Shown here: positions 1,754 to 46,380 of the stretch, one piece after another | Position numbering within the stretch: position 1 is the stretch's first letter | How the letters are laid out: every line of letters starts with the position of its first letter | Source of the DNA: Leidyana gryllorum EB-2025a | Taxonomy: Eukaryota; Protista; Apicomplexa | Length of the DNA stretch: 64,000 nt | Direction of reading: 5' to 3' | NCBI GenBank assembly: GCA_048772705.1 | Contig: JBLWGC010000041.1 | Location: 62,001 to 126,000 of the forward strand | Position numbers and translations under genes: made by a program | Notes under the pieces: model-generated | The model's database searches: none | What the model was told of the DNA's origin: nothing | Seen by the model: only the letters and a program-made list of their open reading frames with translations

Positions 1754-3358
1754 TTACACCAACACAGAGCGAGTCGCGAACAACTCAGGTGCCATGCCTT
1801 CAAGCTGTCCCACCATAGCTTCAACCTGTTTCGCCCAAGTACGGAAGTGGTCTGACAGCAGCTGAATCCTACACAGGCCGCTTGTTGACATCATCTAAAC
1901 ATCCCACTTACTTTGGCTGGTCCAACAACCGGGGCTGCAGCGAGGTGAAAGCAACCTTCTGCTCCACTTGGTCTATGCTGCCGTTCATCAACCCATGAGA
2001 CATGACCTTCAACAGCAGCACCTCCACCTCCTCCATTCGCACCCGGCAGGTCTGGGCAATCTCAGCAAATGTCAACATTCTATTCCGTTGGGGCTTCTGG
2101 AACGCCAACTCCAAGAGCGCGAAGATCGTCACCTTTTGTTCGATCAAATTCATCTTGTCGCGCAACTGCAGCGACAAAGAGGCATAGGGGTGGGCGGTCG
2201 GAGCAAAGACAGATGTAATACGGGTGGGGAGACATCAGACGCACGAACACACACGCCCAAACACACACTAGTGGTTTCAGACAGGGTAATTTGCACACGG
2301 TGGTATGGGCGATTGATCTTACGTCAGGAGTGATGTTCTTTGCAGATTCCTGCACGAAGCTTTCAAAGAGTTGGTGGTCCCCGCTATTACAAATGACAAC
2401 AAGGTCTCTCAAAAATGCTTGGTCAGGATGAGCGAAGCCTCCTGGGGATATGCAGTCCAGAACAGGGTGTTGTAACTGCAATTGGGAGTGGAATTGTTAC
2501 AAATGGTCTCTGTGTAATGTGATACTCACCAACTCTGTGAAGCTGTATATTTTGGGGCTCAGCAGCACAGCTCTGCAAAGGTTTTGAGCCAACTGCACGA
2601 GATCCTCGGGTAGCAATGCGGCTGTTAGCGAATTGACGGGAGAAGGAGCGCAGGAATCTCCACTTACAAAGTTCAGTGCCTTCAAGATAGTGCATTGAAT
2701 GCTTATAGAACTTCTCGAGCTGTTGTTGAGACCAGCAGTATGCGGCTGCAGCTCTGTGGAACTCGGCTTGTGCTTCGCCGCTGAGTCCAAAGGTCTTTTC
2801 CACGGAGGGTTCCAGAAAGTCGTAGAGGAACTCCTCGCACTCCGAAACGAATCCTCCATGTAAGAGGTGGAAAGCTTGGATGGCGCGGTAGAGTAGCAGT
2901 GTATTGGTGTTATTTCGCATTCCAGATTCCCATACTTCGAGGAACTTGAGAGCGGGTAGGCCCTTGAAGGTGTCAGCGACCCTCCGTAGAATCATAAGCA
3001 ACTTGAGTTGATTGAGCTTCCCTGTGACAGGTCTGACTACGTGCACCAGGAAGGCGACGGCGAATTGAGGATCATTGGACCAGCAAGCCGCGAACTGTGG
3101 TGCGAAGAGGTACTCTTCAACAGACTCAGTGAACTGATGATACAGTCGTTTTGCCAGTCGCTCGTCTATGAGGTCCACTTGTTTAGCCACTTCAGCATTG
3201 TTTCGAGACCGTTCAATAGCGAGTTGTTCAGTCGCAGACACGTTGGAGGTTAATACACCATCTATGGGGCTCGGAAGTCGCAGAACACTCTCGAAGGTAG
3301 GCGGAACACCCCATACCAAAGCCTGTTGAGGCTCGTTGCTAGTCGAGGGATTCATCAT
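1754..3358 (-). CDS. RPN9: 26S proteasome lid subunit RPN9/PSMD13 (PCI domain), multi-exon
   Basis: KRLYHQFT, LNQLKLL, AVLLSPKIYSFTEL, R.LTFAEIAQ..VEVLLLKVMSHGLMNGSIDQVEQKV..LQPRLLD; last exon ends ..APELFATRSVLV*. Confidence 0.9.
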
Positions 3359-3368
3359 GCACAAACTT

Positions 3369-4929
3369 TTATTTCTGACACGCTACTATGAAACGCCCTA
3401 ATCCACCAGACAACTCTTGATAACATGGAGTCACCATGCAACGCAGTCCCAAAACCTGTCCTACGGACAAGGCATCTCTCAATGCCTCCTCTCGCTTATC
3501 GTGTTCGACAGGAAGCAGAAAGACAATGCGGCCTCCGGGCACGAGGATTCTTTCTGCTGTCTCCAGTGTGTCTCTGCATGGCGACGAGAGTGTAAGTGTA
3601 AGTGTATGGCTCGCGTCACTGTACCTTATAATGTCTGGAACGGCTCGTTGTGATGTTATTGGATACGAAGCACTTTGTGGTGAGGATGGCTGGCTGTGGG
3701 CAGAGGCTGGGCCCCCAGACTGTCTGGCCATAGCGCGTATGCCGTATGGGGGGTCCGTCAGTATCACATCGGCCCATCCTTTCCGTCTCCACACCTACAG
3801 AGTGGTTGAACGTCATAGGCTTCACGCCCCGTAATCCGCTTACCGGTCTTGAATTATCGCTTCGCACCAACTGGGGTGCTACGAGATCATAGTGTATAAA
3901 GTTGGCTTCCACGTTAGTCTTTTGTGGCGGATTGGGTACCGCTGGATTGACGTACGCGACGCCCCAGCCCCTCAGGACTCGACTGTCCAGATCTGAGCCC
4001 AGTGTCATCCCACAGCCACCGGCCGCTGCTGACAGTAACAGACTGCCGGTGCCGCAGAAGGGGTCCACGACCAGATCGTGGGGTTTGATAGATGCCTGAG
4101 AAGGGATATGGCGGTCGCATCGGAAGAGACTCTCGTGCACGATGTGGGTGTCACCGGTATTAAGCGTCTTACCAGATGGGCCATGATGAATGCCAATTCA
4201 TTGTCTGTTGATGTGGGACCGAGAATTGGACGGGTGCTGAGTTCAAAGCGACGCCAATAGGGGCCCTCCTTGGGTCGGGCTGCTTCGACGATGCCGAAGA
4301 TCGAGCGGCGGCATTTCTGTGTCGAGTAGTCAGCCGGTCCGGGAGGAAAATAGTCCTGAGAGGGTACTATTGGTTCGGATACGGGATCGATTGGTACCTC
4401 TAAGAGTGCTAACTGAATGCCTGGGTTGGCTAGATCAGCTTTCTCATCCCTATTGAAAAGGAATTGCAGCCTATTCATCCTGGCAACATTCTCCTTGAGA
4501 CTGAATGAATAATGGTGGGGAGCTCTGGTTCCGATTGAAAGAGGAGCTGACTTACGTGACACTCCGACCATAAGATTCGCAGTGGAAAGCAAAGGATTGG
4601 CGATCCTTGAGAAGTTGTTGGAACCGAACTGGGTCAACGTCTCGTTTGGCATTGAGAACCATTTCGTCTTCGTTAGTTCCTTCTGCCAGGACTCTAACGA
4701 CCAATTTGACCATCACAGACACTGCCGGCAGAGCCTTGAGGAGCTCTACTTCCCGGCTGTTCTCCTCCAATCCAGATATATAAAGGCACTTCTCCGTGTC
4801 ATTATCCCTGCTGTCGCCCCAGACCCTGTCAGCAAAGTCACTGTCCCAGTTTCTTAGAACAGCTTCTATCTCGGTATATCGAGCATCGCTAAAATCTGGC
4901 GAGCAGGCAAGCCAAAGGGCGTATCTCAT
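3369..4929 (-). CDS. TRM11: tRNA guanine-N2 (m2G10) methyltransferase catalytic subunit, multi-exon
   Basis: RPILGPTSTDNELAFIMA, DLVVDPFCGTGSLLL, GSDLD, DVILTDPPYGIR, LVPGGRIVF. Confidence 0.88.
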
Positions 4930-5039: not shown

Positions 5040-8000
5040 ATGAGCTCCGATCACTACAGGGAAGTAACCCCTACAAGCCATGTATCCACCAGCCAGTACG
5101 CTGATGCTGGTGATTGCCTCTCGCCTCGGCGATTGCAGAAGCATGAGGATCGCGTCCAACGGTCTCATCGCTTCACGTCACCCTATCAGTCGATCGTAAT
5201 TGAGGTGGTCAGCGGGCACTCTTTTTCTCACCCGACTAAAGCTATTGCCAAGCCAGAGATCCATGTAACCCTTGGCGTTAATTCGTACCCTACTCATCGA
5301 GGCAAATTGATCAATAATAACGGTCTATGGTCCTTTCAATGGCGCGCTGGCTTACCCTATCGCGGGGAACCCCGTCTGAGGTGAGATGCACTCACGATCA
5401 ATTGGATTGCTCTTGACACACACACGTTCGATACATCTATATATATATATATATCTGTCACCCCACATTGATTATGTGTCCTGAATCGCTGTCAAACTAT
5501 TATTCCTCGGAACCGTTCCCTCCCCGTCACCTCCTTTCTAATCGGCTCTATCTTCAAATGGCCCCTGCAGATTCCTCCTAGTGGACACAACCTTGAGTCC
5601 CCCGACTCAGGTTGGTTTTTATGATGTCAACATCACTGGGAACAATTTGCCATCACGTCCCCAAGTCCAAGAGCTGACGTTGCTCGGCAAGCGGGGCACT
5701 GCTGGCCACTTGACGGTCCTCTTCCATGGCTCTGAGAAGCCAGTCCGAGGACCGTATCTCATGGACGCTGTAACACCTGTGGCCGTGTCGAAAGACGAGG
5801 CGGTCACTGCTCCTCCGAGTCCGGGCGCGCAAGCGGCCATCACCGAGCCCTCGTCCCCTACACAACGCCTGACACAGGCTGAGTACTTGCAAACCCCTAC
5901 TGAAAAGGGCAACAATAGACGCACTGTGGTGGTGTCAGTGTCCGAGGCTAAGGATTTGTATTCGTTTGAGCACGGAATCTCAGCAGTTCAACCCCTTATC
6001 CGCGCCAAGTATGGCGAAGCTTGCCTCGAAACGGAACCTGCCGACAATCAAAACGATCAAGCCATATATGATCAGAAATTCATCTTCCCTAATCGCGGAT
6101 TACGTTATGTTCATCTCGAGGCTGTCGATATGGCCTCAGGCGGCACCCGTTTGGGCGAAACCTACGTTGATCTCGATGCATATGTTGACAAACCTGTGCA
6201 AACAGTTGTCATCCCCCTATCTCACGGCCCTGACAACCGCGGCACCATTACAGCCAAGGTTGATTTTTATGATTATCACGCATCATACCGTAAGCGGCCG
6301 CACAGTTCGACTACAATCGACATCTGACTTCTTCTCTCTGCAGCCGAAGTCAAGAAAGATGATGTACGCACATCGCGGCTGAAGGCGCGTTCCGATAGCG
6401 AAGATTCGCGGGATACCGCCAAATCTAGCGCGGGCATGAATAAGATCGCGACGAAGAAACCGATAACAGCAAAGTCGCTACGGTTTACCCCACAGGTTGT
6501 AATCATGGGTGATGGAAAGAGTGATCCCCGCGACATAGTTGTCCGAGCTCGTATCGGTCGCAATTGGTTGAAGAGCACTGCCGCGCGTGGAGTGGTGAAT
6601 GATTGCACTCTTAATGAAAGTTTCATATTCCCCTATGAAGCACAACGGAACCTTAAAGTGGTGGTTTTCGCAGAAGATCAGCGTAAATTTGTAGGTTCCA
6701 ACAAACTGGATCTGGAGAAGTTTGTGAATGCTGAAAGACCCAAGGCAGAATACGTCCGCATCCCAGTTTTGGACCGTTCCAAGAAGGGAGTGGCCCAAGT
6801 TGAGGGTATTATCGAACCCCTCCTGTGGCCCACTGCCCAGCCGTTCACTGAAGATGGGGTCTCCACGGCCAAAGACCGCGAAACCGCCGACATTGACGCC
6901 CACCCGGCCATGTTCACCGCCCCAACGCCCACCGAGTGCTTCGAGTTCAAACCAACATTTGTGGAAGACATCAAGAAACCTCGCAAGATTCATGTAGAAC
7001 CCTACATCGTCACTGTCTATGATGGGAAAGAGTTGGTTGGACCGCCTGCGAAAGAAAAGAGCGGTCGGGCTGACTTCTCAACCAAATTTGTCTATCCCAA
7101 ATCCGACTCGGCCCTCATCAAGTAAGTTCTGCCTCACTTCACTCCACTCTCTATTCCACCAACAGAGTCTCTGTATACGATCGGACGCGTTTGACCAAAG
7201 ATCTTCTGTGTGGTGTTGGAGCCATAGACTTGAGCGAATATGCCGACGCAAAGGGCTTCAAGGGTCGCGTTCCCCTTTATGATGATAAACATATCCAGCA
7301 AGGATGGCTCAGCTTTGAGCTCGATTGGATTGAGGAGGTCTCCAATCCGACCACCTGGACTGTGGCGGGCAAATCCGCCCAAAAAGTCCCTGAAGACACG
7401 TCTGCCAGTGTCAGTGGAGAACCCAGCGGCGTTCCACGACACGAGGTCAAGTCGGTCAGAATCCGTATCTTGGAAGGCCGTGGCCTCAAATCCAACAGTA
7501 TCCTCCACAACACCAGCAGCGGTATTGACGCCTTCCCTCAAGTCACGCTGGGTTCCACTCAGCTCAATGGTACCAAGTGCAAAGGCGTCAAGGATCAGTG
7601 TGACTTCAACCAGGAGTTCACCATGCCGTATCAGCCCCAAAGATTCGTCACAGTCTCTGTTCTCGAAGACTTGGCTCTTCATCGCAATGTCACACCCGTT
7701 GGACTCGGCCGCATTGATCTCGATCAGTATCTCAGAGAACCGGATCGCGACCATCGCAACACCATCACTCTTCACGATAAGAAGGGTCAGATTGCCGGCT
7801 ATGTCGTCGCTGTCATCCACCCCTCCACCAAGGCGGTGGAGAGGGCAAAGGTTCTGGAGAGCAAAGTTTCTACAGCCTCACCGTTGTCCAGCACCAAGGC
7901 AACCCGTTTGGATATTATCAAAGCCACTGGCCTCACTGATCTCACCACCCCACAGAAGGAGGATCTCCGCTGCTACTGTATCGCTGGGCAGAGCGATTCA

Positions 8001-11000
8001 AAGGTCAAAGGCAAACGCAGCAAAGATAAGGGACCCGAGCCTCGCTTCACTGACGCTTTCGTCTTCCCATACAAATCTCACCTCCCCATTGCCTGTGGAG
8101 TCCTGGCCAGATCGCCACTCAAGAAGGACATTGTGGTTGGAAACTGTACCATCCCTACCACTGGACTCAGTGCCTTGGGCGACGAGGAAGGTATCAAGCC
8201 CACTGATGATCTCACTGTTCCTCTCACTCTCAATCGTCAAGTTGTTGGCACTCTTCACTACCGTCTCAGCGTCGTTGAGATGTCTCTGGGCAACGCTCGC
8301 AGACTTCAGCGTGAGGGAGAGCTTGAGAGCGACGGCAGTGAAGACAGTCTTGTGGCCGACAACCTCGGCAAATCACAATGGCCTACCTGCAAGAGCTTCT
8401 GTGTTACTGCCATCCGGGGTGACAGTCTGAAACACCCGAGAATGCAGGCCTTCGACACGCTGGACCCGTACCTTGTGTGTGTCTACGGTAAACACAGCCT
8501 CAAGGGAGACGTGCTGCCAAACGCTGGGCCCAACCCAGTCTTCCGCGAGGGCTTCGAGTTCCCTGTGAGGGACTATAAGACTGTCAGATTGGAAGTCTGG
8601 GACCGCAGTCGTGTGTGGAAGAACGCACAAGTCGGTTATGGTAGTATCGATCTGGAACGTTTCTTCGTGACTCTGGCCGAACGCACACCAATCACTGTGC
8701 GTTTGTATGACAAGCGCGGCGAGTATGCTGGCGCAGTTTTGTGCGAAGTCACAACAACGGACCACCCGGCGGGCTCTGCGGCTATATACAACCACAAGGA
8801 CGGAGAGCGGTTCGGCATCGGCCACGACGTCAGTTACATTTCTGAGAACCTGAACGAGCCGGAAAGCCAACTGCAGAGGTCCGATGTACCGTATGGTGGC
8901 TTCGACGTGGAGGTCGTTAGAGTGAAGGATCTCAAGAATCCGCGAACAGCGGATGGCAGCGGGAAGTTCAACCCATACCTCAGATTGAAATACGCGGGCA
9001 CTCGCGCCAAAGGGTCCCGCTATGTTGACACCACTGGCACTTACAATGTTGGTGATGCATTCCACTTCCCCTACAAGCGATTCCAGATGGTTCGACTGGA
9101 TATGTATGACTATCAGCCTGGGAAGGTCGATCCTCTCATTGGCCGGTGCAACATTGATCTGGACAAGTTGATCACTGACGGTCAGGAGGTTAACAAGAAG
9201 CGAGTGGCTCTTGAAGACAAGAGCGGGGCGGACGTGGGTCATGTGTTCCTATGCATCAGATTCAACGATGGTGTTGGTGAAGAGCCTTTCGCTGACTTGG
9301 CGATCCCTGAGTCCGGTGGAGTGATGCGTTCGGCCTCTGACGGTGAATCCAGTCATGGTCTGACAGAATCGGCGATCAAAGATCACGAAATTCAGAGTTT
9401 CCGTGTGCAATTGATCGAAGCGCAGGGCCTGAACCGCGATATGAGTACTTCGAAGGATTCGGAAGAGAGATTGTTGAGTCCTTTCGTCATCGGTCGATTC
9501 GGTTACCGCAGTCTGCGTTCCGAGACGCATCGCGATGCGGGTGACAACGCGGTGTATGACGAGGACTTCGTCTTCCCGTACAAACCGCTGCGCAAACTCA
9601 AATTGACTGTGCGGGACAACGTGAAGCGAGGACGTGACGACGACATTGGATACGCCAAGATCGACTTGGATCAGTTCTTGGGATCCACTGATCCCGCGTA
9701 TTACACCTGCAATCTGTATAACGCCAGTAATGTGGCCAAGAAGGGTGAAGCGGGTACCCTCACAGTTTGTGTCATTCCTTCCAAGAAGGCCGAGAAGAAA
9801 GCCTTTATTGAGAGACGCATGGCACCTCCGGAGGAGACAGTGCAGTTCACTCGAGCGAGTTTCCATATCGACGATCTTACCCTTATCACTAAGAGCACTG
9901 CTCGGTCAAACTTTGACAAATTCGCTCCGTACATTGTCACCAAATACGCCAACAAATCTCTCCGTAGCACCACTATCAAAGATGCTTATGACACTACCAA
10001 AGTTCCTGATCGATTCTGTTACACTGCTCGCCCAGCGAGCTTGGTGCATGTCACTGTGCTCAATAACGCCCGCTTCGCGCCCGATAAGATCGTTGGATCT
10101 GCTCAGCTCGACGTCGCCAGTCTCGCCGGCAAGAAGAGCGCTGTGGAACCGTTCACGCTCCGTCTCAACGACAAGTCGGGAGTCGCGTCCGGAGAGCTGC
10201 GCGGGAACGTCTACTTTGATGACTGGTTGGTACCCAGCGGCGCATTAGTCAGCCGTAGCGATGAAGTTAAGAAGGGCTATCTCAACAAGAAAGCCGTTCT
10301 CGAAGCCGACGAGCAGCAAGCGGACGAAATTGACGACCTTCACAAATCCACTCTCGTTACCGACTTCAAGTCGTTCGACCTCCACGTGGTGAACGCCGAT
10401 AATCTCAAAACGAGCGCTGGGAAGAATGAGGTCTTACAACCGTTCGTCCAGGCCCGCTATGGTAGCGAGAAACTCAAGACCGCCACCGTCAAGAACGGCC
10501 ACACTCGCCCTGAGTTTGGCGATACACTCTCTTTCCCCTGGAGAGGCTATCAGTACCTGCAGTAAGTTCACCATCTCAAAGCGACAAAGGCAAACCGCTT
10601 TCTTCCTTTTCTCCTCTCAGTGTCGAGGTGAAGGACAACGCTCGCTTGGCTCGCGACCCCGTCTTGGGACAGGGTGTGATTGATCTCGATGAGTATATGG
10701 TACCACAGGCGACCAGCCGAATGATACCGCTGGAGTTGAAGACTCCCGATGGCAAATCGGGCGGACTCTTGAATCTCCGGTTTGAGCCCAGTCGAACCCG
10801 TCTCGACAAGGGAGTGGTCAAGTCTTACAGAGCCACCGACACGATGGTCACCAACAAGTCGGTGAAGGATGACGAGCAACTCGACGACGAAAGAGCGGAA
10901 GAGCAGATTGTGGGAGGAAAGGCGACCGGCAGCCGATCCTATAAGATCACAGTCGAGTCGGCTTCTGGATTAGAGAATCCCGATACCTCGGTCCCGGCGA

Positions 11001-14000
11001 ACCCGTTTGTGATCGCCTATGTGGCTAAAGACAAACTGAGATCTCAGAGCGTTCGTAATCCGGGCGGAGAAGTGCGGTTCGGAGATCAAATGTATTTCCC
11101 TCACAATGGTATGAAATGGGTGCGGTTCCAAGTCAAAGATAACAAGAGATTCGGGAGAGACCCCACCGTCGGCTACGCCTATCTCGATGTGGAGGACTTC
11201 CTCTACAACAAGGAGGGCGGTTCCTTCACTCTCCCTGTTACCGACAAGAAGAACGGTACACAGACCGGTTCTCTCCGTGTGAGCTGTCAGCCGAGCGAGA
11301 TGTCTGTTCAGAAGCCTTTCATAATCTTCCCTGAAGGTCTCGAGGACGCAGATCAGGAAGTGTCTAAAGTGTCGACTACGGCGAAGAGTGTAAACATTGA
11401 CATTATCTCTGCTGAAGGCTTACCCACAGCTATCGCTGAGACTCGAAACGAAACGCTCCAGCCTTTCGTTGAGGCCAAGTTTGGTCACACCAGACTCAAG
11501 ACCGCCACTGTACCTGATGGAGGCAAGAGTCCGGCGTTCGGCGACCGTATGACTTTCCCGTATGACGGCAAACGTCTGATTCAGTTCCGCGTTCGTGATA
11601 ATGTCAAGTTGGGCTTCGACGCCACTGTCGGAGAAGGCGCGATCGATCTGGACGAATACATTGGCAACTTGTCTCCTGTGGACGTCAAAGTTCCGTTGTC
11701 GGACTACCACGGCACTCTGAACCTCCGTGTCCATCCGAGCGAAGAGAAGGTCGCCAAAGCTTCAGTTTTGAGCCCATGTCATCGTTCGGCTTCTGTTGAG
11801 CCCGGTGACCAGGATTTGACCCGCAGCAGTTTGAGCTCACCCAACAAGGGTCTGAAGATCGAGATCATCAGAGGAGTCAAGTTGACTAAGACTCAAAAGA
11901 ATGACATTCTGCAGCCATTCGTCATCGGATCTCTCGGAAAGGACAGACTGCGCACCAACACCATCAAAGATGGTGGACGGGATCCCGAGTTTGGCGATAT
12001 TATGTACTTCCCCTATAAGGGATATCAGAACCTTCAGTAAGTGGCACTGAAAGCGATTTCTCTCCTTATAACTCTCGACCTCAGCTTCGTCGTCAAAGAC
12101 AACGCCCGGTTGGCTCGTGACCCCCTTGTCGGTAGCGCCAAGTTGAATTTGGATCACTACATCAACAACCCTCCCACTGACATTGACGTGCCGCTGGCTA
12201 ACGAGGGTATTCCGACCGGTCTGCTCAAAATCCGTCTCACTCCCGAGAGTCGCACTTATCCCAATGCGATGATATACTCTCCAGTCTTAACCAGCCCGAC
12301 CGACGACGAGAGCGACGACGAAGCCGTCAACACTGCCTCGAAAGTGACCACCACCGCGAGGTCCTTCAAGATCGAAGTCCTGGAAGGATCCGGTCTCTCG
12401 CCTTCGAGCAAAAATGAGGTCCTGCAGCCCTTCGTGATAGCTTCCAGCGGAAAGGACAAACTGAGAACCTCCACTGTGCCAAACGGTGGATCGCATCCCA
12501 AGTTTGGGGACAATATGCTGTTCCCCTACCGCGAATATCGGAATGTGCAGTAAGTGGAAATCGAAAAAGGGTCCGCTGTGTACTGACTGAACTCTTTCAT
12601 TCAGCTTCGTGGTCAAAGACAATGCCAAGAGACGACGTGATCCGGTCGTCGGTCGTGGCACTCTGGACTTGGATCAGTATATCAATGGTCCTGGAGAGGT
12701 TTGCACCGTGAAGCTGTGGTCCGATCAAATGACTGATGGTGGCACTTTGCGCCTCAAAGTCACTCCCAGCACCACGTCTCTGGAGAAGGCGAGCGTTGTT
12801 ATGGCTCAGCATGGGACTGTTAGCGAGCTGAGCGAGGAGCAAGATGACTTCCGTGCATCTCTGGTGCAACAGACTCGCGCTCGGTCATTACAGGTGAATG
12901 TAGTTCAGGGTGTGAATTTACCGCAAACCACTCGTGGTCCCGGTGGAAAGGAGCTCCGTCCGTACGTGATGTGTCACCACGGTAAGGATCGTCTCCGAAG
13001 TGAGACTGTCAAGAACGGCGGCCGCGACTGTTCGTTCGGCGACCAAATGTTCTTCCCGTACAACAAATACCGCTACATGAGAGTCTACTGTAAGGATAAC
13101 GTGAGATTGGCCCGTGACCCAGTGGTGGGTCGCGCCGAGCTCGATATGGATCAGTACATCAACGCGGGACCTCAAGAGGTCGAAGTCAAGTTGCTGAACG
13201 ATAAGGGAGAAGCGACTGACTCTGCTGTCCGTCTCCAAATCATCCCTTCGGAGACTCGTTGCTCCGCCGCTTACATTGTTCCCGCACCGGCACAGGCCCA
13301 GGCTTCAGCTGCTGTGGCCAATGAAGTCGACAGTGATGATGACATGGCGCCCAGCAAAGTCACCACCAACTGCAAGAGCATTGCAGTGCAGTGTATCGAC
13401 GCCAGCAACATCCCCTCACCGACAAAGTCCACCAAAATGAAACCCTATGTGATCGGTCGCGTCGGTAAGGATAAGCTGAAGACTCAGACTGTCGTCGCTG
13501 AGCGCGACTCGGCCGTTTTCGGAGACACAATGTATTTCCCATACAACAAATTCCGCAATCTTCAGTAAGCAATAGAGGAGCCATTCGTGACTTCCCAATC
13601 AATTAACTCGTTGCGTGCAGTCTCAAGTTCAAAGAGAACGCCCGCCTGGCAATCGACCCCAAGATAGGATCGGCAGTGGTGGATCTCGATCAGTACTATA
13701 ATGCAACGGAACCGCAGGCGGTGACAGTGCAATACACTCGCGATGGCGGATACCGAGGCGAAATGAGAATTTTGATCACACCGTCCACCAAGTCTATTGA
13801 GAAAGCGTATGTTGTCTCACCTGCCAATGCGGTTGCTCGGGCCGCCATCAACGAGGTCCCGACCAGTTATGTGGAACAGGAGGCTGTGACTGAGGATGTC
13901 GAGGTTGACGATGCTGTGTCTCGGGTGGACAGTACCGCACGTTCCGTCAGAGTTCAATTCAAACACGCCGAGAACATTCCCAAACCCAGCAAAGCCACCA

Positions 14001-17000
14001 AAATGAAACCGTATGTCATCGGTTGGGTTGGCAAAGAAAAGACAAAGACTCAAGCGGTCGAAGCCGCTGGCGACCTCGCGACCTTTGATGACATTATGTT
14101 CTTCCCGTACAAGAAACAGCGGTATCTGCAGTAAGTCACTGGGTCGATCGATCGTTGTTAAAAAGAGATTGCGGTGCAGTCTCAAATTCAAGGAGAGCGC
14201 TCGTCTGGCCGTCGACCCGATGATTGGATCCGCAAAGATCGATTTGGACGAAGTCATCAACAACGAGGAAGGCGCCTGGTTCCCGGTTCAGTACCAACGT
14301 GATGGATACGACAGAGGAAACATGGACGTTTTCATCATGCCGTCGCGCGAGGTCGTCGACAAAGCATTCTGCCGCAGTCGACCCGTGGCACCGCTGGCAT
14401 CAGTGGCCAAGACAGAGCTCAAGTCAACCATTTCTGAAGGCACTGTCGACGATGTGGAGGATCTCGAGCTGATCACCAATAAGAATCCTGCGGTCCAATC
14501 GATCACCGTTCAGGTCGTCGACGGTTTTGACATCCCTCTCCCCAGCAAAGCCACCAAGATGCGACCATACGTCATTGGACGCATCGGTAAAGACAAGGTA
14601 AAGACACAGACGGTGGATTCCTTCGACAAGATGGCAAACTGGAACGACACTATGTACTTCCCCAACAAGAACTACCGCACTCTCCAGTAAGTACATATGC
14701 CATCCAGTCGCTTCGCTGACACTCCCATAATAGGCTCAAATTCAAGGAGAATGCTCGGTTGGCTATTGACCCAATGATCGGTACTGCCTCCATTGATCTC
14801 GAACCGCTGTACGCAACCCCCAACGAAGCGATGGATGTACCCGTCAAGTTCTACCGTAACGGAGCCTACGGAGGCACCGTCAACTGTCGCGTAGCCACCA
14901 GTACCAAACCGTGTTCCAAGGCTAACGTAGTTTCGGGTCCCGTTGTTCGCCGCCGCAGCTCAGTAAGCTTGGCTGGATCCGTTGTGGACTCGGCTGATGA
15001 AAGCATAACTCCATCCGCTGTCCAAACGGAGAACCGCAGCTACACCGTCAAGTTGATCGAAGCTCAGGGGCTCGCGAGATCTCCCAACGATGCGGATCGG
15101 GTCATCAATCCCTTCGTAATTGGAACCATCGGAAAGGATTCGTTGAGAAGTGCCACGGTGAAACAGGGCGGAGCTAATCCCCAGTTCACCGACGAGTTCG
15201 TCTACCCCTACAGACACCTGCGTAACCTCCAGTGAGTGGTGTCATCAAAGTGTTCAGCACCTGACTTGTCTCCTTCTCTCTTCTCGCAGCTTCAAAGTGA
15301 AGGACAATGCCCGTCTGCGTCGCGATCCGGTGCTCGGCGAGGGTGTCATCGCGCTGGACCAATATATTGACTCGCCGCAACCCGTTGTTCTGGATGTGCC
15401 ACTCCGCGCCCCGGATAGCGGGGCCGCTGCTGGCAAACTGAAGATTGAGATCAACCCGTCCCGCACGAGAGTGGAGAAGGCTTATCTCAAGGCACCTCCA
15501 GCGGCGATCCAGAGCTCTGCAAAAGCCGCCGTAGTGAATGAAGATGACGAATTGGCACCTTCTTTCGTGACTACGAAGAGTCGCAGTTTCAAGATGGAAG
15601 TCATCCGAGGCGCCAGTCTCCCACGTACCGCCAAGAATGACATTCTGCAGCCGTTCGTTGAGGTTACCTTCGGAGGCACTCGTCTTAAGACCAATACCGT
15701 CAAGGACGGCGGAGCAGATGCAGCTTTTGGAGACCGTCTGTACTATCCGTACCACAAATACAGAAGTGTGCACTTCAAGGTGAAGGACAACGCAAGACTG
15801 GCCAGGGATCCGGTGGTGGGCACCGGCAAGTTGGTGATCGACGAACTCATCAATGCTGAGAATCCTCAAGAAGTCGAAGTCAAACTTACCAATCCGGACA
15901 ACCACCGATCCGCGGGCAGTCTCTGGATTAAGTTTAGCCCAAGTGTGGACCGCGTGGAGAAGGCGTACCATGTGCCACCAGCGCAGAAATTGAGCAGTGT
16001 GGAGAAATCGGGCATGGAGCTCAGCAGTGGAGCCGACTTTAGCGATGAGGAGGACCTCACTGCTTCGGCAATCTTCAGTGCAAACAAATCGTTTGTCGTC
16101 GAGGTCCAAGGGGCCACTGCGCTGAACGTTGCTGGCCGCCAGGCCCAGGCACCCTTCATCTACTTGAAGAGCGGCAAGGAGCGACTGCGCTCCCAGACTG
16201 TCCCGGGACGGTTCCAGGTCGAATTTGGCGACAAGATGTACTTCCCGTACCGTAACTTCAAGTCACTGCACGTTAAAGCAAAAGATAACCGACGTATGAA
16301 CAGAGACCCGACAATCGGAACCGGAGTCATTGATATGGACAACTTTATCAATGACGAGCCCAAGACTGTGGAGGTCCCGTTGGTGACCGCTAAGGGCATC
16401 AAGGCTGGAAGTGTGCGTCTCCTTATTTCCCCGAGTGCTAACAAGGTGGAAAAGGCCTTCGTGATTCACCCAGAGAGTCACGCTGTGGAGGATCTGAACG
16501 CTGGAGCCGCTGTAGTGAGCAGTGCCAAGACCATCAAGGTCGAGATCATCGAGACTAAAGACCTCCCACCCTCGACCGACAACAAGATACTGCAACCTTT
16601 CATCCAAGGAAGGCACGGAAAGAGCAAAGTGAAGACTTCAACTGCCAAAGACGGAGGATCCAATCCCGAAATCAATGACATTATGTTCTTCCCTTACCAG
16701 AATATGCGATATTTGGGTCTGGAAATCAAAGATAATGTCAACTTTGCTCGCGATCCCGTAGTGGCTCGGGGAGCCATCGATTTGGATCCTCTGGTCACCA
16801 GCCATGAGATTCACGAGGTCACTGTCCCGCTGACCCGCATGAACTTGTCGGAAGACGAAAATGCCAATAAGCAGAACAGCTATGGTGGTCTCCTTCGAGC
16901 TCGTATCACGCCACTAAGCAGCGATTGTGGAGGAAAAGCGTATGTGGTCACGCCGAGCAATGTTAGCCGAGCCGCCAAGGAAGCTGTCAGTGATGACGAG

Positions 17001-18938
17001 GATGAATGGAACGTTCGAGTGTCTCAAGCCGCTAGCGAAATCGAGAGTTTCCGCATAGAGTTCGCCAACGCGTGCGATATTCCTCCCAGTCGCAAGAATA
17101 ATATCTTGCAGCCATACATCATTGGACATTGCGGAAAGAACAGACTCCGCACGAGCACTGTGGTCAATGGAGGGTCCAACTGCGTCTTTGGGGATATCAT
17201 GGAGTTCCCTCAGCAACAGTACCGATATGTGACTCTCAAAGTGAAGGACAACGCCAAGATGGCTCGCGATCCTATCGTGGCTTGGGGCACAATCGATTTG
17301 GAGCGCCTTCTGCGTCGGGCTGAGCGTGAGAAGGGCACAGACTCGAGACACTTTGAGCCCATTGATGTCACTGTCGATCTGAGTACTGAAAAGTCGCCTG
17401 ATGCTGGAGTTCCAGCCGGGTTCTTAAACGTCCGGCTGATTCCTCAGGCGTTCCCCATCAAGGAGGCCCGTGTCTTCAGTCCGAACAAGACTGGGGCTGG
17501 CAGTGCTGAGGTCGTCGACGAAGCATTGGTGCCCAGTGAGGTCGTATCGACTTATCAAGGATTCTCCCTCGAGGTTGTTAACGGCCACAAACTCAAGAAT
17601 CCCAAACCCACCTTTGACACATTGGATCCGTACATTGTCATCCGTTTCGGTGGCGAAGAGCTCCGAGGAGCGGTGATCAAAGACGGTGGCGACAACCCCG
17701 ACTTTAACCAGTCATTCACTTTCGGATGGAAGACCTTCAAGAACATGGTGATATATGTCTTCGACAAGGCACATCTGTCGCGTGACCCGCTCATCGGTGC
17801 TGCGAAGGTCAATATGGACTTCTACGGCTGTGCTGAAGCTCCCATCCATCTGATCAAACTGCAACTCCGAGACAAGAGGGGTCGGGTCAGTGGATATCTC
17901 AACTGCAAGTTGAACTTGACAAAGGATGTGGAACCCGCCACTCTGGTGCCCACTGTCAAATTCATGGAAGACTCTGATCCCTTCAAGTCCTTCGACCTGC
18001 GACTCAAGAATGGTGAGAAGATTGTCAATAAACAGAGGAAAGAGGGTCTCGTGAGCCCTTACGTCCGCATTCGATTCGGTAACACCGATATCAATAGCGC
18101 CGTCGTGGTCAATGGTGGCCCCAATCCACAATTTGATCATGTCTTCAACATCCCGAAATGTGGAGCAAAACTTCTGGTTCTTGAGTGCCACGATGTACGT
18201 CAAGATGCTGAGGATCAAATCATTGGTTACGGTTTCGCTGATTACATGGCTTTCGTCGACTCCCCAGAGAAAACAATGCCCGTCAAGGTCAAACTCGTTG
18301 ATGGCCCCACCGACACCGGAGTGCTCAACATTGTTTTGTCCAAGTCCCCCGAGCGGTCCACCGTTGCGACCATCAAGTCTGCTCATGAGAGCTATGTGCC
18401 AAAGACTGTGCTTCCAGTTGACATTATGGACGACAGTTCGGAAGCAGATAGTGACGATGATGCCGAGGTCGATTACATATATCCTCCAACTGATTGGAAC
18501 AGCGTGCACCTCAGCATCGAGAGAGCAGAAGGCCTCCGAGGCTCCGGACCCGGTGGAGCTCTGATGATGAGACTTGACCCCCTCCTCACCGTCCGGCTAC
18601 ACCGTCTCGAGCTCGAGAGTGACGTGTTCAAAGGATTCACTCCCCAATTCAACTCCACCTTCTCATTCCCGTACAACAACGAAGCCAAGATCAGTATCAA
18701 AGCTTTCGATCACGAGCCGTGGAGAGCAAACCGCGAACTGGGCTATGCTCAGCTCAAATTACAGCACTTCTTGGGTGATCAGTCTCAACAGCATACCACG
18801 AGCAAACTCGAAATCCCCTTGGTCAACCGCAAGGGTAAACCAGCTGGTACTCTTTTCGGTCAGATCCGTCTGTCGAAGATGGAGATCGATGAACCAGCGG
18901 TCATCATGATGAGAAAAGGAGCCAGAGTCGTTGAGTAG
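5040..18938 (+). CDS. Giant tandem C2-domain protein (~4412 aa, 27 C2 repeats, 11 exons)
   Basis: Exons 5040-5380, 5571-6289, 6344-7121, 7166-10561, 10621-12036, 12085-12549, 12605-13564, 13621-14130, 14180-14686, 14734-15231 and 15290-18938 join in frame (13239 nt) through GT..AG introns. Repeat consensus S(F/V)xIxVxxAxxL..QPFV..GKxKLxTxTVKxGGxxPxFGDxMxFPY..xxxVKDN.RLARDPxVG.xxIDLD, a C2 beta-sandwich pattern. Confidence 0.9.
5417..5454. repeat. (AC)n and (TA)n microsatellites in intron 1 of the giant C2 gene
   Basis: acacacacac followed by tatatatatatatatat inside the 190-nt intron 5381-5570. Confidence 0.85.
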
Positions 18939-20513: not shown

Positions 20514-21321
20514 TCAAGCATGCAGGCGCACGGACTTATTGGAGGAATCCCAGCTACCTATGAGCTCCACCCTGAATTCGCCCATTGCTAGGCCTAATTG
20601 CCTCTGTCGAAGAAGAAGAACAAGATACAGATTCGCACACATGTGTGGTACCTACCAGAATGCGTGCTGCGTTGGCACTGAGTGGCTCGCCACCTCGGCA
20701 CACCACAAAATCCCCCTGAAGTGCTATCTTCCCGTCTACCAAAGCTGTGGGCATGCCTAAGCTTCTCAACAGAGGTTCCAAAGAATGTGGAAGATGGTTT
20801 AAAGCATCCAGCCCAGCTTCGAGCTCCACTGTGCCTTTGGCAATGTCTCCAGCGCGGGCATAAGTCTCTGTTTGAGCTTCTAGCAGCTTCTCTGTGACTC
20901 CATTGGCGTCTTCGTTGGTGATCAGCAGAGCCGCCGAACCAGTCAACAACTAGGGAGCATTTTGGAAAAGGCGCCCCTCTATACAGTATAGCTTACCCCA
21001 GAGAGTTTGTATAGATTTGGGAGGGTGGAGGTCTCTTTGGTGGTACCGATGGCAACTTGCATGACACGGTTGCGAGTGGCGTACATTCTGAAGCAGTTTG
21101 TCTGACTTAAGAATGAGGTGAAGAGCGTACCTGCCGGGTTTGAGTTGCTCCCGGAGCGCTTGTAAGTGCACGTTCTCGCCATTGACTATTCTGAGCACAT
21201 GACAATATCTATTGCCCTTGAGCAATTCCCGGATGTTTTCTATGGCTTCCGACTTGTTGGCCTTAGTCTTCTTGGTGACCTTGGTCAAATTGACCACCTT
21301 GACACGTTTGGATTTGGGCAT
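20514..21321 (-). CDS. MRT4: Ribosome assembly factor Mrt4 (P0-like), multi-exon
   Basis: MPKSKRVKVVNLTKV, NRVMQVAIG, LTGSAALLITN, YARAGDIA, HSLEPLLRSLGMPT, VCRGGEPLSANAARIL. Confidence 0.92.
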
Positions 21322-21349
21322 AGCTGGTCAAAAGCAGGCGCAAAAAAAT

Positions 21350-23268
21350 ATGCATCGCCTCGATGCGGTGCTGCTTGAGATTGTGGACAGACTCGCGTTC
21401 TGCAAGAACCTGGCAATAAGGTCAGTATGTCTGGCACCATTGGTGGCAACGGCTCCATTGGTGGGCGCCCATTTGGTGCCGAGTGCGATGGAGGAGGCCT
21501 GGTGGCGGAGATTATGTTGTGAGATCAGCAACTTTGGGCCCACCAGCGTAAAGTTCCTACAATGGGCGTCTACCCGCAAGGACCTTTTCCCCCCTGCTTT
21601 TTGCGAGCACTTGGCAAAATACCAGGATAAGGTACCTCTGGAGGCGTTCCCTTTCTTTTGCACGCACTTCTGGGATGCGATAGATTCCCATCACCGTATT
21701 GGATATATACAGCCCTGGGCTTGCGGTTCAGGTAGTGTGGCGCAGGTTTACCCAACTCTCCTGCCTGCTGAGGAGGCTGCAAACCCCGCCCTCTTCACCG
21801 AAGGGGTAGCAAAACTTCTTCGGTACCAGATAGAACGTCGCATCCGGACAGGTATGAATCGGTCCCAGATGAGAATCCCCAAACTGTCCTTCTGTCCACT
21901 GTAATAAAACCGCCATCTGACAATCACCAACGAAACAGCCCCCCACACTTATGCGCTTGACACTTATCAGACTTGACATGGATGGACCGAGTTGCTAATT
22001 TGATCGAGAAGCTATCGGGGGTCCATGGCGAATGGTTACCCTTGCGCGCCGGGTGAGTCTCTCTCTAATGTGCGCTTCATCGGTGTTGATGCGCACTCTC
22101 AACACATCCCACACATCCGCGTCCTCACCTTGCACAGAGTGCAGCAGTTTGGCAGTCTGGTCTTGCCTCAATGCGATCTATTGAGGGAAGCTCGGGCTAT
22201 GCAGCAGTTCGAGAAAAACTTCTGTAATAGAGCTTCTCGCCGCTTGCTACGCCGATCGGGTGGAGTCTTGGTAGTCCCTCGAGTCCACGCTCAGTTGTCC
22301 ACCATGTTTGCCTTGTTCGAAAGCCGCGAGAAAGGAATGTCTTTCGAAAAGTGGCTCGCACACAGCATTGAGCTCCGAAAGGCTGCCTCCCTGCGCGATG
22401 ACTCCAACGTATCCGACCCCGAAGGTTCTCAGGCCGCCTGGAAAGCTCGCCTGGAACCAATAGTCTCTAGGTGTGTACAATTCTTCTATGACACCGGTAA
22501 CGTGTCTGAGTCTCGATTGGCACACATGGGAGTGAACATGTTTCTCCAAATGCTAATCAATGATAACTTTGTCCACACTGATTTGCATCCGGGTAATCTA
22601 TTAATCCGAATGAGGCCTCGGACATCGGAGGAGCGCGGGAAATGGAGAATCTGGCGGGGATGGCTGGATCGTCGCAGAGGCGATATCATTGAATTGGTGT
22701 TACTAGACGGTGGTTTGACAACTACTTTGGCACCCAGGGACAGAACCAACTTTCTCGACCTGTTTCGAGCTGTTGCCTTTGGAGAGGGCTATAAAGCCGG
22801 CCAACTATTGCTCAAACGCGCGAAACGACAAGCGTGCAAAGACGAGCACGGCTTCTGTTGTGCAGTCGCCAGTTTAGTCGCACGATATGTTGGGCCGCCC
22901 ATAAGCATCACCGATCTAGTGAGTGCAACAACTTTGAGTGTGTGTCAAGATGTGTGCTATTTATGTCTCCGTGTCTGTCCGAGTGGTCTCCTAAATTGCT
23001 GCTATCTTCCAATGTCTGCCAGAATCGAGGAGCACTCAAAAGGTTCACCATTGAGAATTTGAGGATGGGAGATGTGTTACAAGATATAATGAGTTGTTCG
23101 TTGAACTATCGAGTAGAGCTGGATCCCGCTTTTGTTGGAGTAATGCTCGCGACAGTGGTGTTGGAAGGCGTGGGTCGCACATTGGATCCAACTATTGACC
23201 TGTTGGCGGCCGCCCGACCTTTCCTCAGTTCTCTGCTGTTGAGTCAGAGCACAAACCAAACTAGTTAG
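21350..23268 (+). CDS. ABC1/UbiB-family atypical kinase (ADCK2-like), multi-exon
   Basis: GPTSVKFLQWASTRKDLFP, GSGSVAQVY, QCDLLREA..F..NF, DNFVHTDLHPGNLLI, LLDGGL, VLEGVGRTLDP. Confidence 0.88.
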
Positions 23269-32608: not shown

Positions 32609-33800
32609 ATGAACCTCCTCCTGGTGGACTCGGCCTCCCTCGATGACAATGGCTGCTTTCTCTTGGCGAAAGAGACACTCGACCACCTGCGTAACGTACT
32701 CAAGGCCGAGGTGAGTACCCTGGAATCAACCCGCGCACACAATAAGTGGCCACCTTCTACAGAGAGGAGATGCTGTCAAGGTGGGTATCATCGACGGTCA
32801 ACGAGGTTTAGGCCAACTCGACTTGGACACTCCTGGCAAGGAGACTTGTCGACTACTCCCACTCCGTTTCCAATCCGTCGCTGGCATCCTATCCTATCTC
32901 GCCGAGGCTCACGCTGCAGAGTCTCCCGCTACCGAGCAGCCAACTTACATTTGGCCCCCCATCTCCGCGTATGAGAGAGCGTTGTGGAGTGAGTCTCCGA
33001 TCCTCGATGATCCCAACAGTATGGGGACGCCGAGAATGACGGGAGATGTAGCGGTAATCGAGAAGGGTAATTCAGAGCCCTTCAAGTATCCGCCCACTGA
33101 CCTCAAGGGCTTCAAACCCTTCAACTCTACTGTAAGCCGGGTGAAGATGCCTTTGGTCGACTTGGCCTTAGCGTTACCCCGGCCTCGTACCTTCGACAAG
33201 GTGCTGCAGTTCATCACCTCCATGTCGGTTGGCAGAATAACCATCTTTGCCGGTACTCGAGCCGATCTGGCTTATATGAGCAGTCCCAAGGTTACGGGTC
33301 CTGAAGCTGCGAAGAGTATCAAATTGGGTCTCGAACAGAGCGGGAAGACCACAATGCCACCAGTCGACGTTGTCGGTTCATGGAACTCTGCCCTGATCCA
33401 AATAAAAGAACACGTCGAGAGGGAAGGCCACTTGGTACTGGTTGCCCATCCATACCCCGTACCTGGGCGTGAGAAGGGCGTTCCCCTAAACCTCTTGGAG
33501 ACGCCTATTCTTCAGCACCAGGGCCCCGTTCTGATCATATTGGGGCCCGAGAGGGGCTTCACTAACGAGGAATTGGTTACAATCCTGGATTCCGTCCCTA
33601 ATACCTATCTGGTAGATTTGGGGTCCGACATCCTAAGATGTGAAGTTGCATGCTGTGCGCTGATGGCTCAATGCCAATTGTTACTGCAGAAATCCCCATT
33701 ACGGCCCCTCGAATACGAGCGGAAAGCGCCAGCCGACCTTCGGAGAAGGGATCGGTACCGAGTGAGCGCACGAGGACTTCGAAGTAGCAAGAAAAATTAA
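32609..33800 (+). CDS. rsmE: RsmE-family SPOUT rRNA (m3U1498-type) methyltransferase, one intron (32711-32762)
   Basis: MNLLL..LDHLRNVLKAE|RGDAVKVGIIDG, LALALPRP, GLEQSGKT, IILGPERGF, LGSDILRCEVA. Confidence 0.88.
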
Positions 33801-39100: not shown

Positions 39101-39746
39101 ACTGCTGGTGATACTTTGCCATCGCTTCCTCGGCTTCCCGACCACCGGTTCTCGCCACCAATCCAACGAATACTCCCTCCGTTGTCACCAGAAATATGAG
39201 GTTTCGAGGACGACGCAGTCGACTCCATAGGCGCTGAGAAGCATTAGCTGTGAATAAGAGACTGGAGAGTGGGAAGGGGGCGATGAGCGATGAGTGAGCG
39301 ATGAGTGAGCGGTGAGTGAGCGGTGGGGTGGACAGTGAGGATTCAGACTCACCTGAGTCAGTGCCGGTGGCCGGTCCACTTGGAGACAGATACAGAGACG
39401 AGGAGCGAATGGGCCCGGGAGGACATCATAGGTGACAAAACGAAAGTCGGTATATATGGCGACCGAGTGCTGCCAGCAGGCCTCATAAGAGCCGCTCAGA
39501 CATTTGGGATTGAGCTTCGCCACATACAGATTTCTAACACTAATTCGTATTTGATCGACCAACGTCGGGGATATCGGCCTATCGAGCCGTGCGACCTCTG
39601 CATCGTTGTAGGGACGCCAGGCGCCTCGTTTGATCGACTGGAGGAGAGGCTCAAAGGTTCGCAGGAGCTCAATACGATAGTCATTCTTTCTCGCACTGTG
39701 AACCAATAATCAAGTCGCCGCGACCGCTGTTACCGTACGTGTTCAT
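36123..39746 (-). CDS. ZNFX1-like NF-X1 zinc-finger protein with degenerate SF1 helicase region
   Basis: Tandem Cys/His fingers (CLEPCGVKLPCGHMCPGLCSLC, CGHRCTKKCGQSCWPC, CFTTLDCGHGCCGMC), RING-like LDCGH..LPRCPLC, and helicase-motif remnants upstream. The start is approximate. Confidence 0.7.
39285..39328. repeat. 11-nt tandem repeat (GAGCGRTGAGT, ~4 copies) inside an intron
   Basis: gagcgatgagt gagcgatgagt gagcggtgagt gagcggtgggg. Confidence 0.85.
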
Positions 39747-45593: not shown

Positions 45594-45988
45594 GATCACT
45601 GCAATGCAACACCAATAAACAGGAAGGAGTAGATCACTGCAATCACGGTCAACAGCAAATTCAATAAGTCTAGTACACGCCAAAAATCCGACCTTTCTTC
45701 GTCATCATGTGTGCGCCGATCGAACGCGTGCGTCACCCCCCTGTGCTATCATGGCCACCCCGTTTGTACCATTCGGCAAAGTGTGTTGTTGATTTAGCGA
45801 TCTAATGTTCATGCGATTCGATGTGGTCAGGTCGCATCTGTCTTGCTTTCTGGCTGAACACGCATCTGAGGGTCGTCTTTCCCGAGACACCGTACCGTAG
45901 TAATCTAGCAACTAGCTGCCGTAGGCGTAAGGAAGTATGAGCCAGTGTCCTGTCGTCAGTTCGCCACTTGCTCGGTGTTGCGTGCAAA

Positions 45989-46330
45989 TCATGCAACCTG
46001 AGCTTTCATCTCTTGGAAGGCATCGAACTCTCTCAGCACCATGTCTTTCAAGCTTCCCATGAACTGCTTTGCCCTTTCAGGGTACTCCGCAAAAATCGAC
46101 GCCAACGTCGCTTGAGCTTGCTCCAACCGGTCCTTCATCTCATCTTCCACCTCCTCCACCGAACGGCAATGAAAGTACTCAGCTAGTTCCTCTTGATGGT
46201 CGAAAAACTCTGCCATGATGTCCGTAGCCTCACTCACGTGTCCCTTTTTCAGCTCCCCTTTCGCCCGCTTCAATGAATCCGCATACATCGTTTGGACTTG
46301 AGCTGACACAGTAGGATCAGGAGCAACCAT
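45989..46330 (-). CDS. Hypothetical small acidic helical protein
   Basis: 113-aa ORF with amphipathic helical composition that fills an otherwise empty gap. Confidence 0.5.
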   Translation of the reverse strand: MVAPDPTVSAQVQTMYADSLKRAKGELKKGHVSEATDIMAEFFDHQEELAEYFHCRSVEEVEDEMKDRLEQAQATLASIFAEYPERAKQFMGSLKDMVLREFDAFQEMKAQVA

Positions 46331-46380
46331 ATTCACTTTGCGACTCCAAAAGGGTCTCTCTCCAAAAAGTACTGCCCTGT

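Follow-up and report, generated by a model that had tools for sequence, protein, structure and literature searches.

The gene described here lies on the forward strand of a 64,000-nucleotide (nt) stretch of the genome of the gregarine Leidyana gryllorum EB-2025a (contig JBLWGC010000041.1, positions 62,001 to 126,000), which is referred to below as the window and to which all coordinates refer. It encodes a predicted protein of 4412 amino acids (aa) composed of 27 type-II C2 units, and both are called poly-C2 here. Judged by its sequence, from which we also infer its function, the gene is real and intact and is the extreme member of a gregarine family of poly-C2 proteins that have no membrane anchor. 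The evidence for this finding includes a splice model that closes in frame, a collinear relative in Gregarina and a position in the repeat that nine of the ten introns share.

Gene model and C2 units

The gene was resolved by exon-by-exon phase arithmetic into 11 exons and 10 introns between an ATG at 5040 and a TAG at 18938. All 10 introns have GT-AG ends and are 44 to 59 nt long, except for the first, which is 190 nt. With this splicing, predicted from genomic sequence, the coding sequence is 13,239 nt long and specifies 4412 aa plus the stop codon, with phases that close and no internal stop. The parts of the gene and its upstream neighbor are as follows.

5040..18938, + strand: whole gene, 4412-aa poly-C2 protein, 27 type-II C2 units (Pfam scan, phase check, repeat profile)
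5040..5380, +: exon 1, 45-aa polar leader and N-half of the degenerate unit 1
5381..5570, +: intron 1, 190 nt, phase 2, at the shared repeat position, contains an (AT)n run
5571..6289, +: exon 2, C-half of unit 1 and unit 2
6290..6343, +: intron 2, 54 nt, phase 1, in the linker of units 2 and 3, the sole intron outside the shared position
6344..7121, +: exon 3, unit 3 and N-half of unit 4
7166..10561, +: exon 4, 7.0 repeat periods from the C-half of unit 4 to the N-half of unit 11, phase 2/2
10621..12036, +: exon 5, about 3 periods (2.9), phase 2/2
12085..12549, +: exon 6, 1 period (C-half of unit 14, linker, N-half of unit 15)
12605..13564, +: exon 7, 2 periods
13621..14130, +: exon 8, 1 period
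14180..14686, +: exon 9, 1 period
14734..15231, +: exon 10, 1 period
15290..18938, +: exon 11, C-half of unit 20, units 21 to 27, short C-terminal tail and TAG
3372..4929, -: TRM11-like tRNA methyltransferase, head-to-head neighbor, probable ATG at 4929

Because the TRM11-like gene starts only about 110 base pairs upstream (ATG to ATG, on opposite strands), there is no room for further 5' exons. The same head-to-head TRM11 neighbor was found in Logan contig SRR18067488 beside a single poly-C2 open reading frame (ORF) of 2583 codons. Nine of the 10 junctions split a C2 domain at a common codon and phase, and the halves rejoin in frame across 44 to 190 nt. In addition, the relatives introduced below are continuous: G. 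niphandrodes has its protein in one ORF, and the ORFs of Ancora, Polyplicarium, and GHVP come from transcripts. A preliminary description of this DNA had proposed eleven in-frame exons coding for about 4412 aa in one gene rather than several, and the above-described results bear it out on both counts. It is hardly credible that the locus is instead a row of separate genes, codes for a polyprotein that is later cut, or is a repeat expansion without function: the splice model was drawn from genomic DNA, which leaves some room for this, but the halved domains and the continuous orthologs argue against separate genes, and third codon positions near saturation with conserved first and second positions argue against an expansion of junk, although in the polyprotein version cleavage within the linkers could still occur. 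A pseudogene or neutral expansion was likewise ruled out by the stop-free phases and the conservation by codon position, and an assembly artefact was ruled out because protein identity between repeats is only 10 to 58% and DNA self-matches of more than 100 nt show just 67 to 71% identity.

The 27 units were recognized with an iterative profile that started from the intact repeats. Eighteen lie whole within one exon and the other 9 are split by an intron; the latter were scored as two halves, and exons and within-exon repeats were searched separately, not as a joined protein. Unit spacing averages 162 aa (range, 143 to 181), in agreement with the count of 27 at about 163-aa spacing given previously. 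Unit 1 is degenerate, with an N-half that scores 7 bits, and is 42% identical to residues 13 to 100 of the Gregarina sp. Poly1 protein. When the exons were scanned with Pfam, they returned only C2 (PF00168), above its curated cut-off (>22 bits) in exons 4, 5, 6, 7, 9, and 11, plus weak NT-C2 matches over the same stretches; no Fer-type (FerI, FerA, FerB, or DysF), SMP, MUN, PRT_C, or vWA domain and no catalytic domain was detected. The most hydrophobic 19-residue window of any exon has a Kyte-Doolittle mean of 1.03 and a transmembrane (TM) helix is therefore absent, while the N terminus is polar and not signal-like. The earlier statement that there is no TM helix, signal peptide, or other domain was thus confirmed by hydropathy and Pfam.

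The fold of the repeats was then modeled. A single-sequence AlphaFold model of units 21 to 23 was poor (predicted local distance difference test score [pLDDT], 51), and a model of units 21 and 22 based on an alignment of 55 repeat pairs was used instead. It contains two eight-stranded C2 sandwiches (pLDDT, 91.5) that are joined by a linker with a pLDDT of about 50 and have no fixed mutual pose (predicted template modeling score [pTM], 0.59). The modeled unit 21 aligns end to end with dysferlin C2A (Z, 16.9; root mean square deviation [rmsd], 2.1 A over 120 residues), other type-II structural matches are Munc13 C2B, PLC-delta1, and cPLA2, and sequence matches to the type-I synaptotagmins end near position 97 of 133. 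In the model, units 21 and 22 adopt type-II C2 topology. The linkers are 17 to 47 aa long (median, 35) and rich in A, S, V, E, and D, with a mean charge of -2.8, compared to +2.9 for the C2 cores. Both the C2 fold that had been proposed for the repeats and their description as beads on a string, here a flexible one, hold, the former by Pfam and AlphaFold and the latter by the low confidence of the approximately 35-residue linkers and the pTM. In the linkers following several of units 11 to 24, the last strand is followed by a brief conserved stretch like EKA(Y/F)V; on unit 21 AlphaFold modeled it as an extra three-residue strand.

The gregarine family and the growth of the array

When the repeat profile was compared to 1.84 billion representatives, gregarine proteins ranked first, with that of Gregarina sp. 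Poly1 at the top (1170 bits). The relatives are as follows.

Gregarina sp. Poly1, EP01054_P006666: 2373 aa, 14 units
G. niphandrodes, EZG65891.1, annotated "C2 domain protein": 1546 aa, 9 units
GHVP01028280: 1655 aa, 10 units
Polyplicarium translucidae, DN2372: 1142 aa, 7 units
Ancora sagittata, EP00914_P011127: 5+ units
P0003/P0151: 6 units
Logan contigs ERR10900127 and SRR18067488: further relatives

We take Poly1 to be transcriptome-derived and GHVP to be Polyrhabdina. Family members have C2 units only, with a 160- to 170-aa period and a common unit signature, and lack TM segments where scanned. Their best units score 73 to 117 bits in the main members versus about 70 or less in other matches, and Poly1 is collinear with the poly-C2 gene from the first unit to the last. 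Since the per-unit scores exceed those of generic C2 domains, the unit order is collinear, and intron position and synteny are shared, we place the protein in a gregarine family, apparently undescribed, whose members are poly-C2 chains of variable length and have no anchor. Unit-by-unit matching to Poly1 divides the array into three blocks (10 + 14 + 3), as would be expected of fixed ends and one central unit amplified about 14-fold.

5175..10226, +: units 1 to 10, old divergent block, counterparts of Poly1 units 1 to 10
10350..17447, +: units 11 to 24, amplified block, mostly nearest Poly1 unit 11
17532..18881, +: units 25 to 27, counterparts of Poly1 units 12 to 14

In this correspondence units 2 and 4 match weakly and unit 26 was assigned by tree, and the trees bear out the blocks in outline. 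Twelve of the 14 units in the central block score best to Poly1 unit 11, and their mutual protein identity averages 37%, versus 20% among the remaining units; units 17 to 19 form a younger triplet that is 47 to 58% identical. A single origin of units 11 to 24 was not established, with trees shifting units 17 to 19 and the N-half of unit 20 slightly apart, and one clade for the block was not rejected by the approximately unbiased test (p-AU, 0.26). The N-half of unit 20 (positions 15011-15231 of the window) is 48% identical to unit 9 versus 45% to its amplified neighbors, and its C-half resembles unit 11, weakly suggesting an exchange at the shared intron. Poly1 and P0151 have a single copy resembling unit 11, ERR10900127 (L062) has about 3, and the gene here has about 14. 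Identity among units 11 to 24 is 0.49, 0.60, and 0.34 at codon positions 1, 2, and 3, respectively, and 0.31 at fourfold sites; because the first two positions are conserved while the third and the fourfold sites are low, the amplified block is, on sequence grounds, a set of old duplications under purifying selection.

How the array could have grown is suggested by its introns. Nine of the 10 fall at the identical codon within the repeat, in phase 2, and four introns of ERR10900127, a gregarine-like genomic contig, fall at the same codon and phase, each of its unit-11-like copies being intron-split. Because the introns share codon and phase, exons 4 to 10 are whole-number repeat cassettes (7, 3, 1, 2, 1, 1, and 1 periods), all symmetric, each running from the C-half of one unit through a linker into the N-half of the following unit, a circular permutation of the domain. 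When such a cassette is duplicated or skipped, the frame is kept and whole domains are produced. Duplication of symmetric phase-2 cassettes around unit 11 would explain the growth of the array, and possible length isoforms made by cassette skipping are predicted. The shared intron position would make this a clear case of protein growth by symmetric exon cassettes.

No close paralog was found in the host genome (15.5 megabases, 237 contigs), where no other C2 locus scores above 56 bits and the intact units score 105 to 157 bits. Two of these loci may be mentioned: one on the reverse strand (G000:C2:122000-131999) has at least 6 divergent C2 stretches of 7 to 32 bits with the family profile and is not a close paralog, and the other (G000:C186:68000-77999) is an open frame of 3567 codons, in which one C2 domain looks canonical (56 bits, the best non-self match) and a second is weak. 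No synteny with G. niphandrodes was seen inside 10-kb flanks. Cryptosporidium, coccidia, Plasmodium, and chromerids were absent from the 30 clusters named among the 150 best matches, in a search not dedicated to them. Word-index searches, which are limited by length and word and carry little weight, gave no match for exon 11 and only Ancora for the Polyplicarium protein.

Very long C2 arrays without TM helices were also found in protists outside this family.

Anaeramoeba ignava, KAJ5068616.1: 3901 aa, single ORF, 22-24 C2
Luapelamoeba hula: 3416 aa, 20 C2 and 2 CH
Diphylleia rotans: 13 C2
Cyanophora paradoxa: 11-12 C2
Trichomonas vaginalis, KAI5517567.1: 8-9 C2

The Anaeramoeba protein resembles the one described here in its 166-aa period and its fixed ends with an amplified middle, but twelve of its units are near-identical. 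The units of these giants have at best 23 to 26% identity to the units here, keep their Ca2+ ligands mostly intact, and include internal amplifications of their own with units up to 100% identical. For these reasons the giants apparently had independent origins and look convergent, and the existence of such unrelated Ca2+-type proteins suggests that C2 arrays of giant size evolved repeatedly. The uniqueness implied in the preliminary description is therefore overstated: 27 is the highest C2 count among the 150 best matches, a ranking by gregarine profile that could miss longer distant arrays, but relatives with 5 to 14 units and unrelated protists with 20 to 24 TM-less C2 domains do exist. The literature searched, mostly outside subscription journals, yielded no account of the gregarine family or of giant multi-C2 arrays; relatives carry automatic annotations, and within this scope no characterized ortholog of the same architecture was found. 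Two metagenome proteins (P0008 and P0009, the latter from a cluster of 78 members) are TM-less, 2.1 kaa long, and combine 9 or 10 Ca2+-type C2 domains with 5 to 7 filamin repeats, apparently an undescribed type of membrane-cytoskeleton linker.

Binding chemistry and possible roles

The number of acidic residues at the five canonical Ca2+ positions of loops 1 and 3 was used as the ligand score of each unit. Twenty of the 27 units have 0 or 1, six have 2, and unit 27 has 3, and each of the 14 amplified units has exactly one; the 4 or 5 acidic ligands of Ca2+-dependent C2 domains of the PKC/synaptotagmin type were found in no unit. The mean score is 1.2 here and 1.3 to 1.4 in Poly1 and G. niphandrodes, compared to 3.2 in Ancora, 3.6 in Polyplicarium, and 3.2 in GHVP, which have a dysferlin-C2A-like pattern. 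In the type-II C2A domain of dysferlin, K32 and R34 are part of a polybasic site for phosphatidylinositol 4,5-bisphosphate [PI(4,5)P2] (10.1101/2021.02.10.430549). Both equivalent positions on beta3 are Lys or Arg in 13 of the 14 amplified units versus 0 of the 22 units counted in Ancora, Polyplicarium, and GHVP. Right before the third loop, Lys or Arg is found in each of the 14, with 1 to 4 more basic residues within the loop. Compared to the groove consensus for PI(4,5)P2 (Tyr/Lys/Lys/Lys/Trp/Asn), 13 of the 14 have the aromatic residue and the two beta3 Lys/Arg, with Lys or Arg at the Trp position. The amplified unit type is, as read from its residues, acid-poor with a putative basic groove. 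The binding residues apparently changed from acidic to basic, and we infer from an unrooted comparison that Ca2+ binding was lost in the Gregarina line. Lipid binding, as proposed previously, is plausible and is supported by the conserved putative groove; by such acid-poor units it is probably Ca2+ independent.

The reading that we favor, for which the case is nearly but not quite evenly balanced, is that the protein is a soluble, cytosolic, Ca2+-independent, multivalent coat or tether of anionic membranes, strung on flexible acidic linkers. Each amplified unit would bind PI(4,5)P2 or phosphatidylserine weakly without Ca2+, and many weak units together would give a high avidity that substitutes for a TM anchor. 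In eight-stranded C2 domains both termini exit opposite the lipid-binding loops, and for this reason the beads would hang from the chain rather than lie in line with it, so placed that they could rest on one membrane or bridge two close ones. The acidic linkers would stay off the anionic surface and serve as spacers, and chain length would be tuned by duplicating the symmetric phase-2 cassettes around unit 11. The site might, speculatively, be the cortex or pellicle, for example, the space between plasma membrane and inner membrane complex (IMC) in the epicytic folds.

Several points weigh against a membrane coat or tether. The PI(4,5)P2 consensus is incomplete in the amplified units, the first Lys being mostly absent and Asn replaced by Asp, and the net charge of the cores is modest and does not exceed zero in seven units. 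Where C2 domains have no Ca2+ ligands, they often serve in contacts between proteins. The acidic linkers could, moreover, cover the basic groove or contribute ligands for Ca2+. Finally, Tetrahymena C2D1, a joint-top structural match, binds the tubulin surface and sits on the microtubule (PMC11642885).

This last point favors a protein-binding scaffold, unlikely in our estimation but with a chance of some weight, whose units would dock on each other or on a periodic lattice (12-nm filaments, alveolin meshwork, actin or myonemes, or microtubules), with lipid binding absent or secondary. The loss of Ca2+ ligands agrees with it, as do the CH or filamin domains of unrelated poly-C2 giants and the position-specific identity of units 1 to 10 and 25 to 27, which is kept across species and would fit distinct partners. 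However, the two-domain match to C2D1 has an rmsd of 22 A and an identity of only 13 to 15%, no known cytoskeleton-binding domain was found here by Pfam, and the conserved basic residues map onto the lipid-binding groove and loop.

A Ca2+-regulated factor for trafficking, mucus secretion, or membrane repair, acting as a soluble analog of a ferlin or DOC2, in which a few units sense Ca2+ and the others bind lipid constitutively, is decidedly unlikely for the protein here and fits the Ancora-type members better, since Ancora, Polyplicarium, and GHVP keep 3 or 4 acidic ligands in most units. The seven units with 2 or 3 acidic residues here could act as sensors, and by sequence the PDB entries that match best are ferlins, but the ferlins rank high only through summed weak domains; the single acidic ligand of every amplified unit, the low means of Poly1 and G. 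niphandrodes, and the lack of TM, SMP, MUN, and Fer domains all speak against such regulation.

The preliminary description had also suggested a titin-like filament. An in-line elastic filament or molecular ruler that sets a pellicle dimension would suit the regular 162-aa period, the fixed ends and variable middle, the in-frame skippability of all of exons 4 to 10, and a contour length that we roughly estimate at up to about 330 to 450 nm. However, the linkers are long and acidic, are predicted to be mostly disordered, and leave no fixed inter-domain pose, C2 topology puts both termini on one end of the sandwich, and distinct end-anchoring domains are missing. A stiff or load-bearing filament is disfavored by the loose linkers and the placement of the termini, and the titin-like proposal, weakly supported and doubtful, is highly improbable.

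As for where a membrane coat or tether might act, a site between plasma membrane and IMC or at the pellicle folds, as suggested in the preliminary description, would be attractive: the folds of Gregarina contain thin filamentous connections between plasma membrane and IMC as well as dense structures, whose make-up was left unidentified (PMC3849649). The protein would be a concrete candidate for these links and structures of the epicytic folds. That it is such a pellicle element (the connections or the rippled dense structures), specific to gregarines and built as an anchor-less lipid-binding polymer that went over from Ca2+-dependent to constitutive binding in the Gregarina line and has its length tuned by duplicated or skipped one-repeat cassettes, is an unlikely proposal.

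Neighboring genes and known C2 systems

The other genes of the window include the following housekeeping neighbors, which show no functional clustering with the poly-C2 gene.

2426-3382, -: proteasome PSD13/Rpn9
20557-21327, -: ribosomal L10/P0 family
22004-23059, +: ABC1 kinase
32715-33797, +: RNA methyltransferase

Two long frames, at 46315-51096 (+, 1594 codons) and 36126-39425 (-, 1100 codons), had no Pfam match. An intronless gene at 44100-45701 (-) encodes a 534-aa FGGY/xylulokinase-like kinase whose best 120 matches are 56 to 65% identical; those named among them are alphaproteobacterial (Lichenihabitans, Methylobacteriaceae, and Rhodobacteraceae) with zero eukaryotes, making it a candidate for lateral transfer into the gregarine.

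The significance of the poly-C2 gene is limited by its familiar domain, by the similar giants of other protists, and by a function that is predicted from sequence. Nevertheless, its 27 units make it the longest design of C2 units alone that was found, and a gregarine family that so far carried automatic annotations only gains a definition. The family forms a natural series, from 5 to 27 units and from Ca2+-type to acid-poor, basic ligand chemistry, and this makes avidity-based membrane binding directly testable.

Characterized multi-C2 proteins have 2 to 8 C2 domains, usually with an anchor or effector domain. Even the gregarine relatives have 5 to 14 units, compared to 27 here with about 14 copies of unit 11, and in Ancora, Polyplicarium, and GHVP the Ca2+ ligands are retained and the basic pair is missing, whereas the protein here is acid-poor and basic. 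It lacks the arrangement that defines synaptotagmin, DOC2, and rabphilin, in which a TM, MID, or Rab-binding region precedes two type-I C2 domains, and it lacks the vWA domain that follows two C2 domains in copines. Titin and obscurin share with it giant size, tandem beta-sandwiches, and symmetric exon cassettes, but their beads are Ig/Fn3 domains with short end-to-end linkers and kinase or end-anchor domains, in place of which we found C2 units, long disordered linkers, and neither kind of added domain. Ferlins combine 5 to 7 C2 domains with Fer/DysF domains and are anchored by a C-terminal TM helix (PMC7999867). They (dysferlin, myoferlin, and otoferlin; TgFER1-3) are similar in having several type-II C2 domains with Ca2+-binding and degenerate units mixed, yet the poly-C2 protein, despite its ferlin matches in the PDB, lacks TM and Fer/DysF domains. 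Extended synaptotagmins/tricalbins (E-Syts) and MCTPs also have tandem type-II C2 domains; compared to these, the protein here has neither the membrane hairpin and SMP domain of the former nor the PRT_C domain with TM helices of MCTP/FTIP proteins, has no membrane anchor, and has five to nine times more C2 domains. The C2C domain of E-Syt2/3 tethers the plasma membrane through a basic patch, independently of Ca2+. By analogy, the nearest working model for the poly-C2 protein may be this end of an E-Syt, which binds membranes without Ca2+, in many copies and freed of its anchor.

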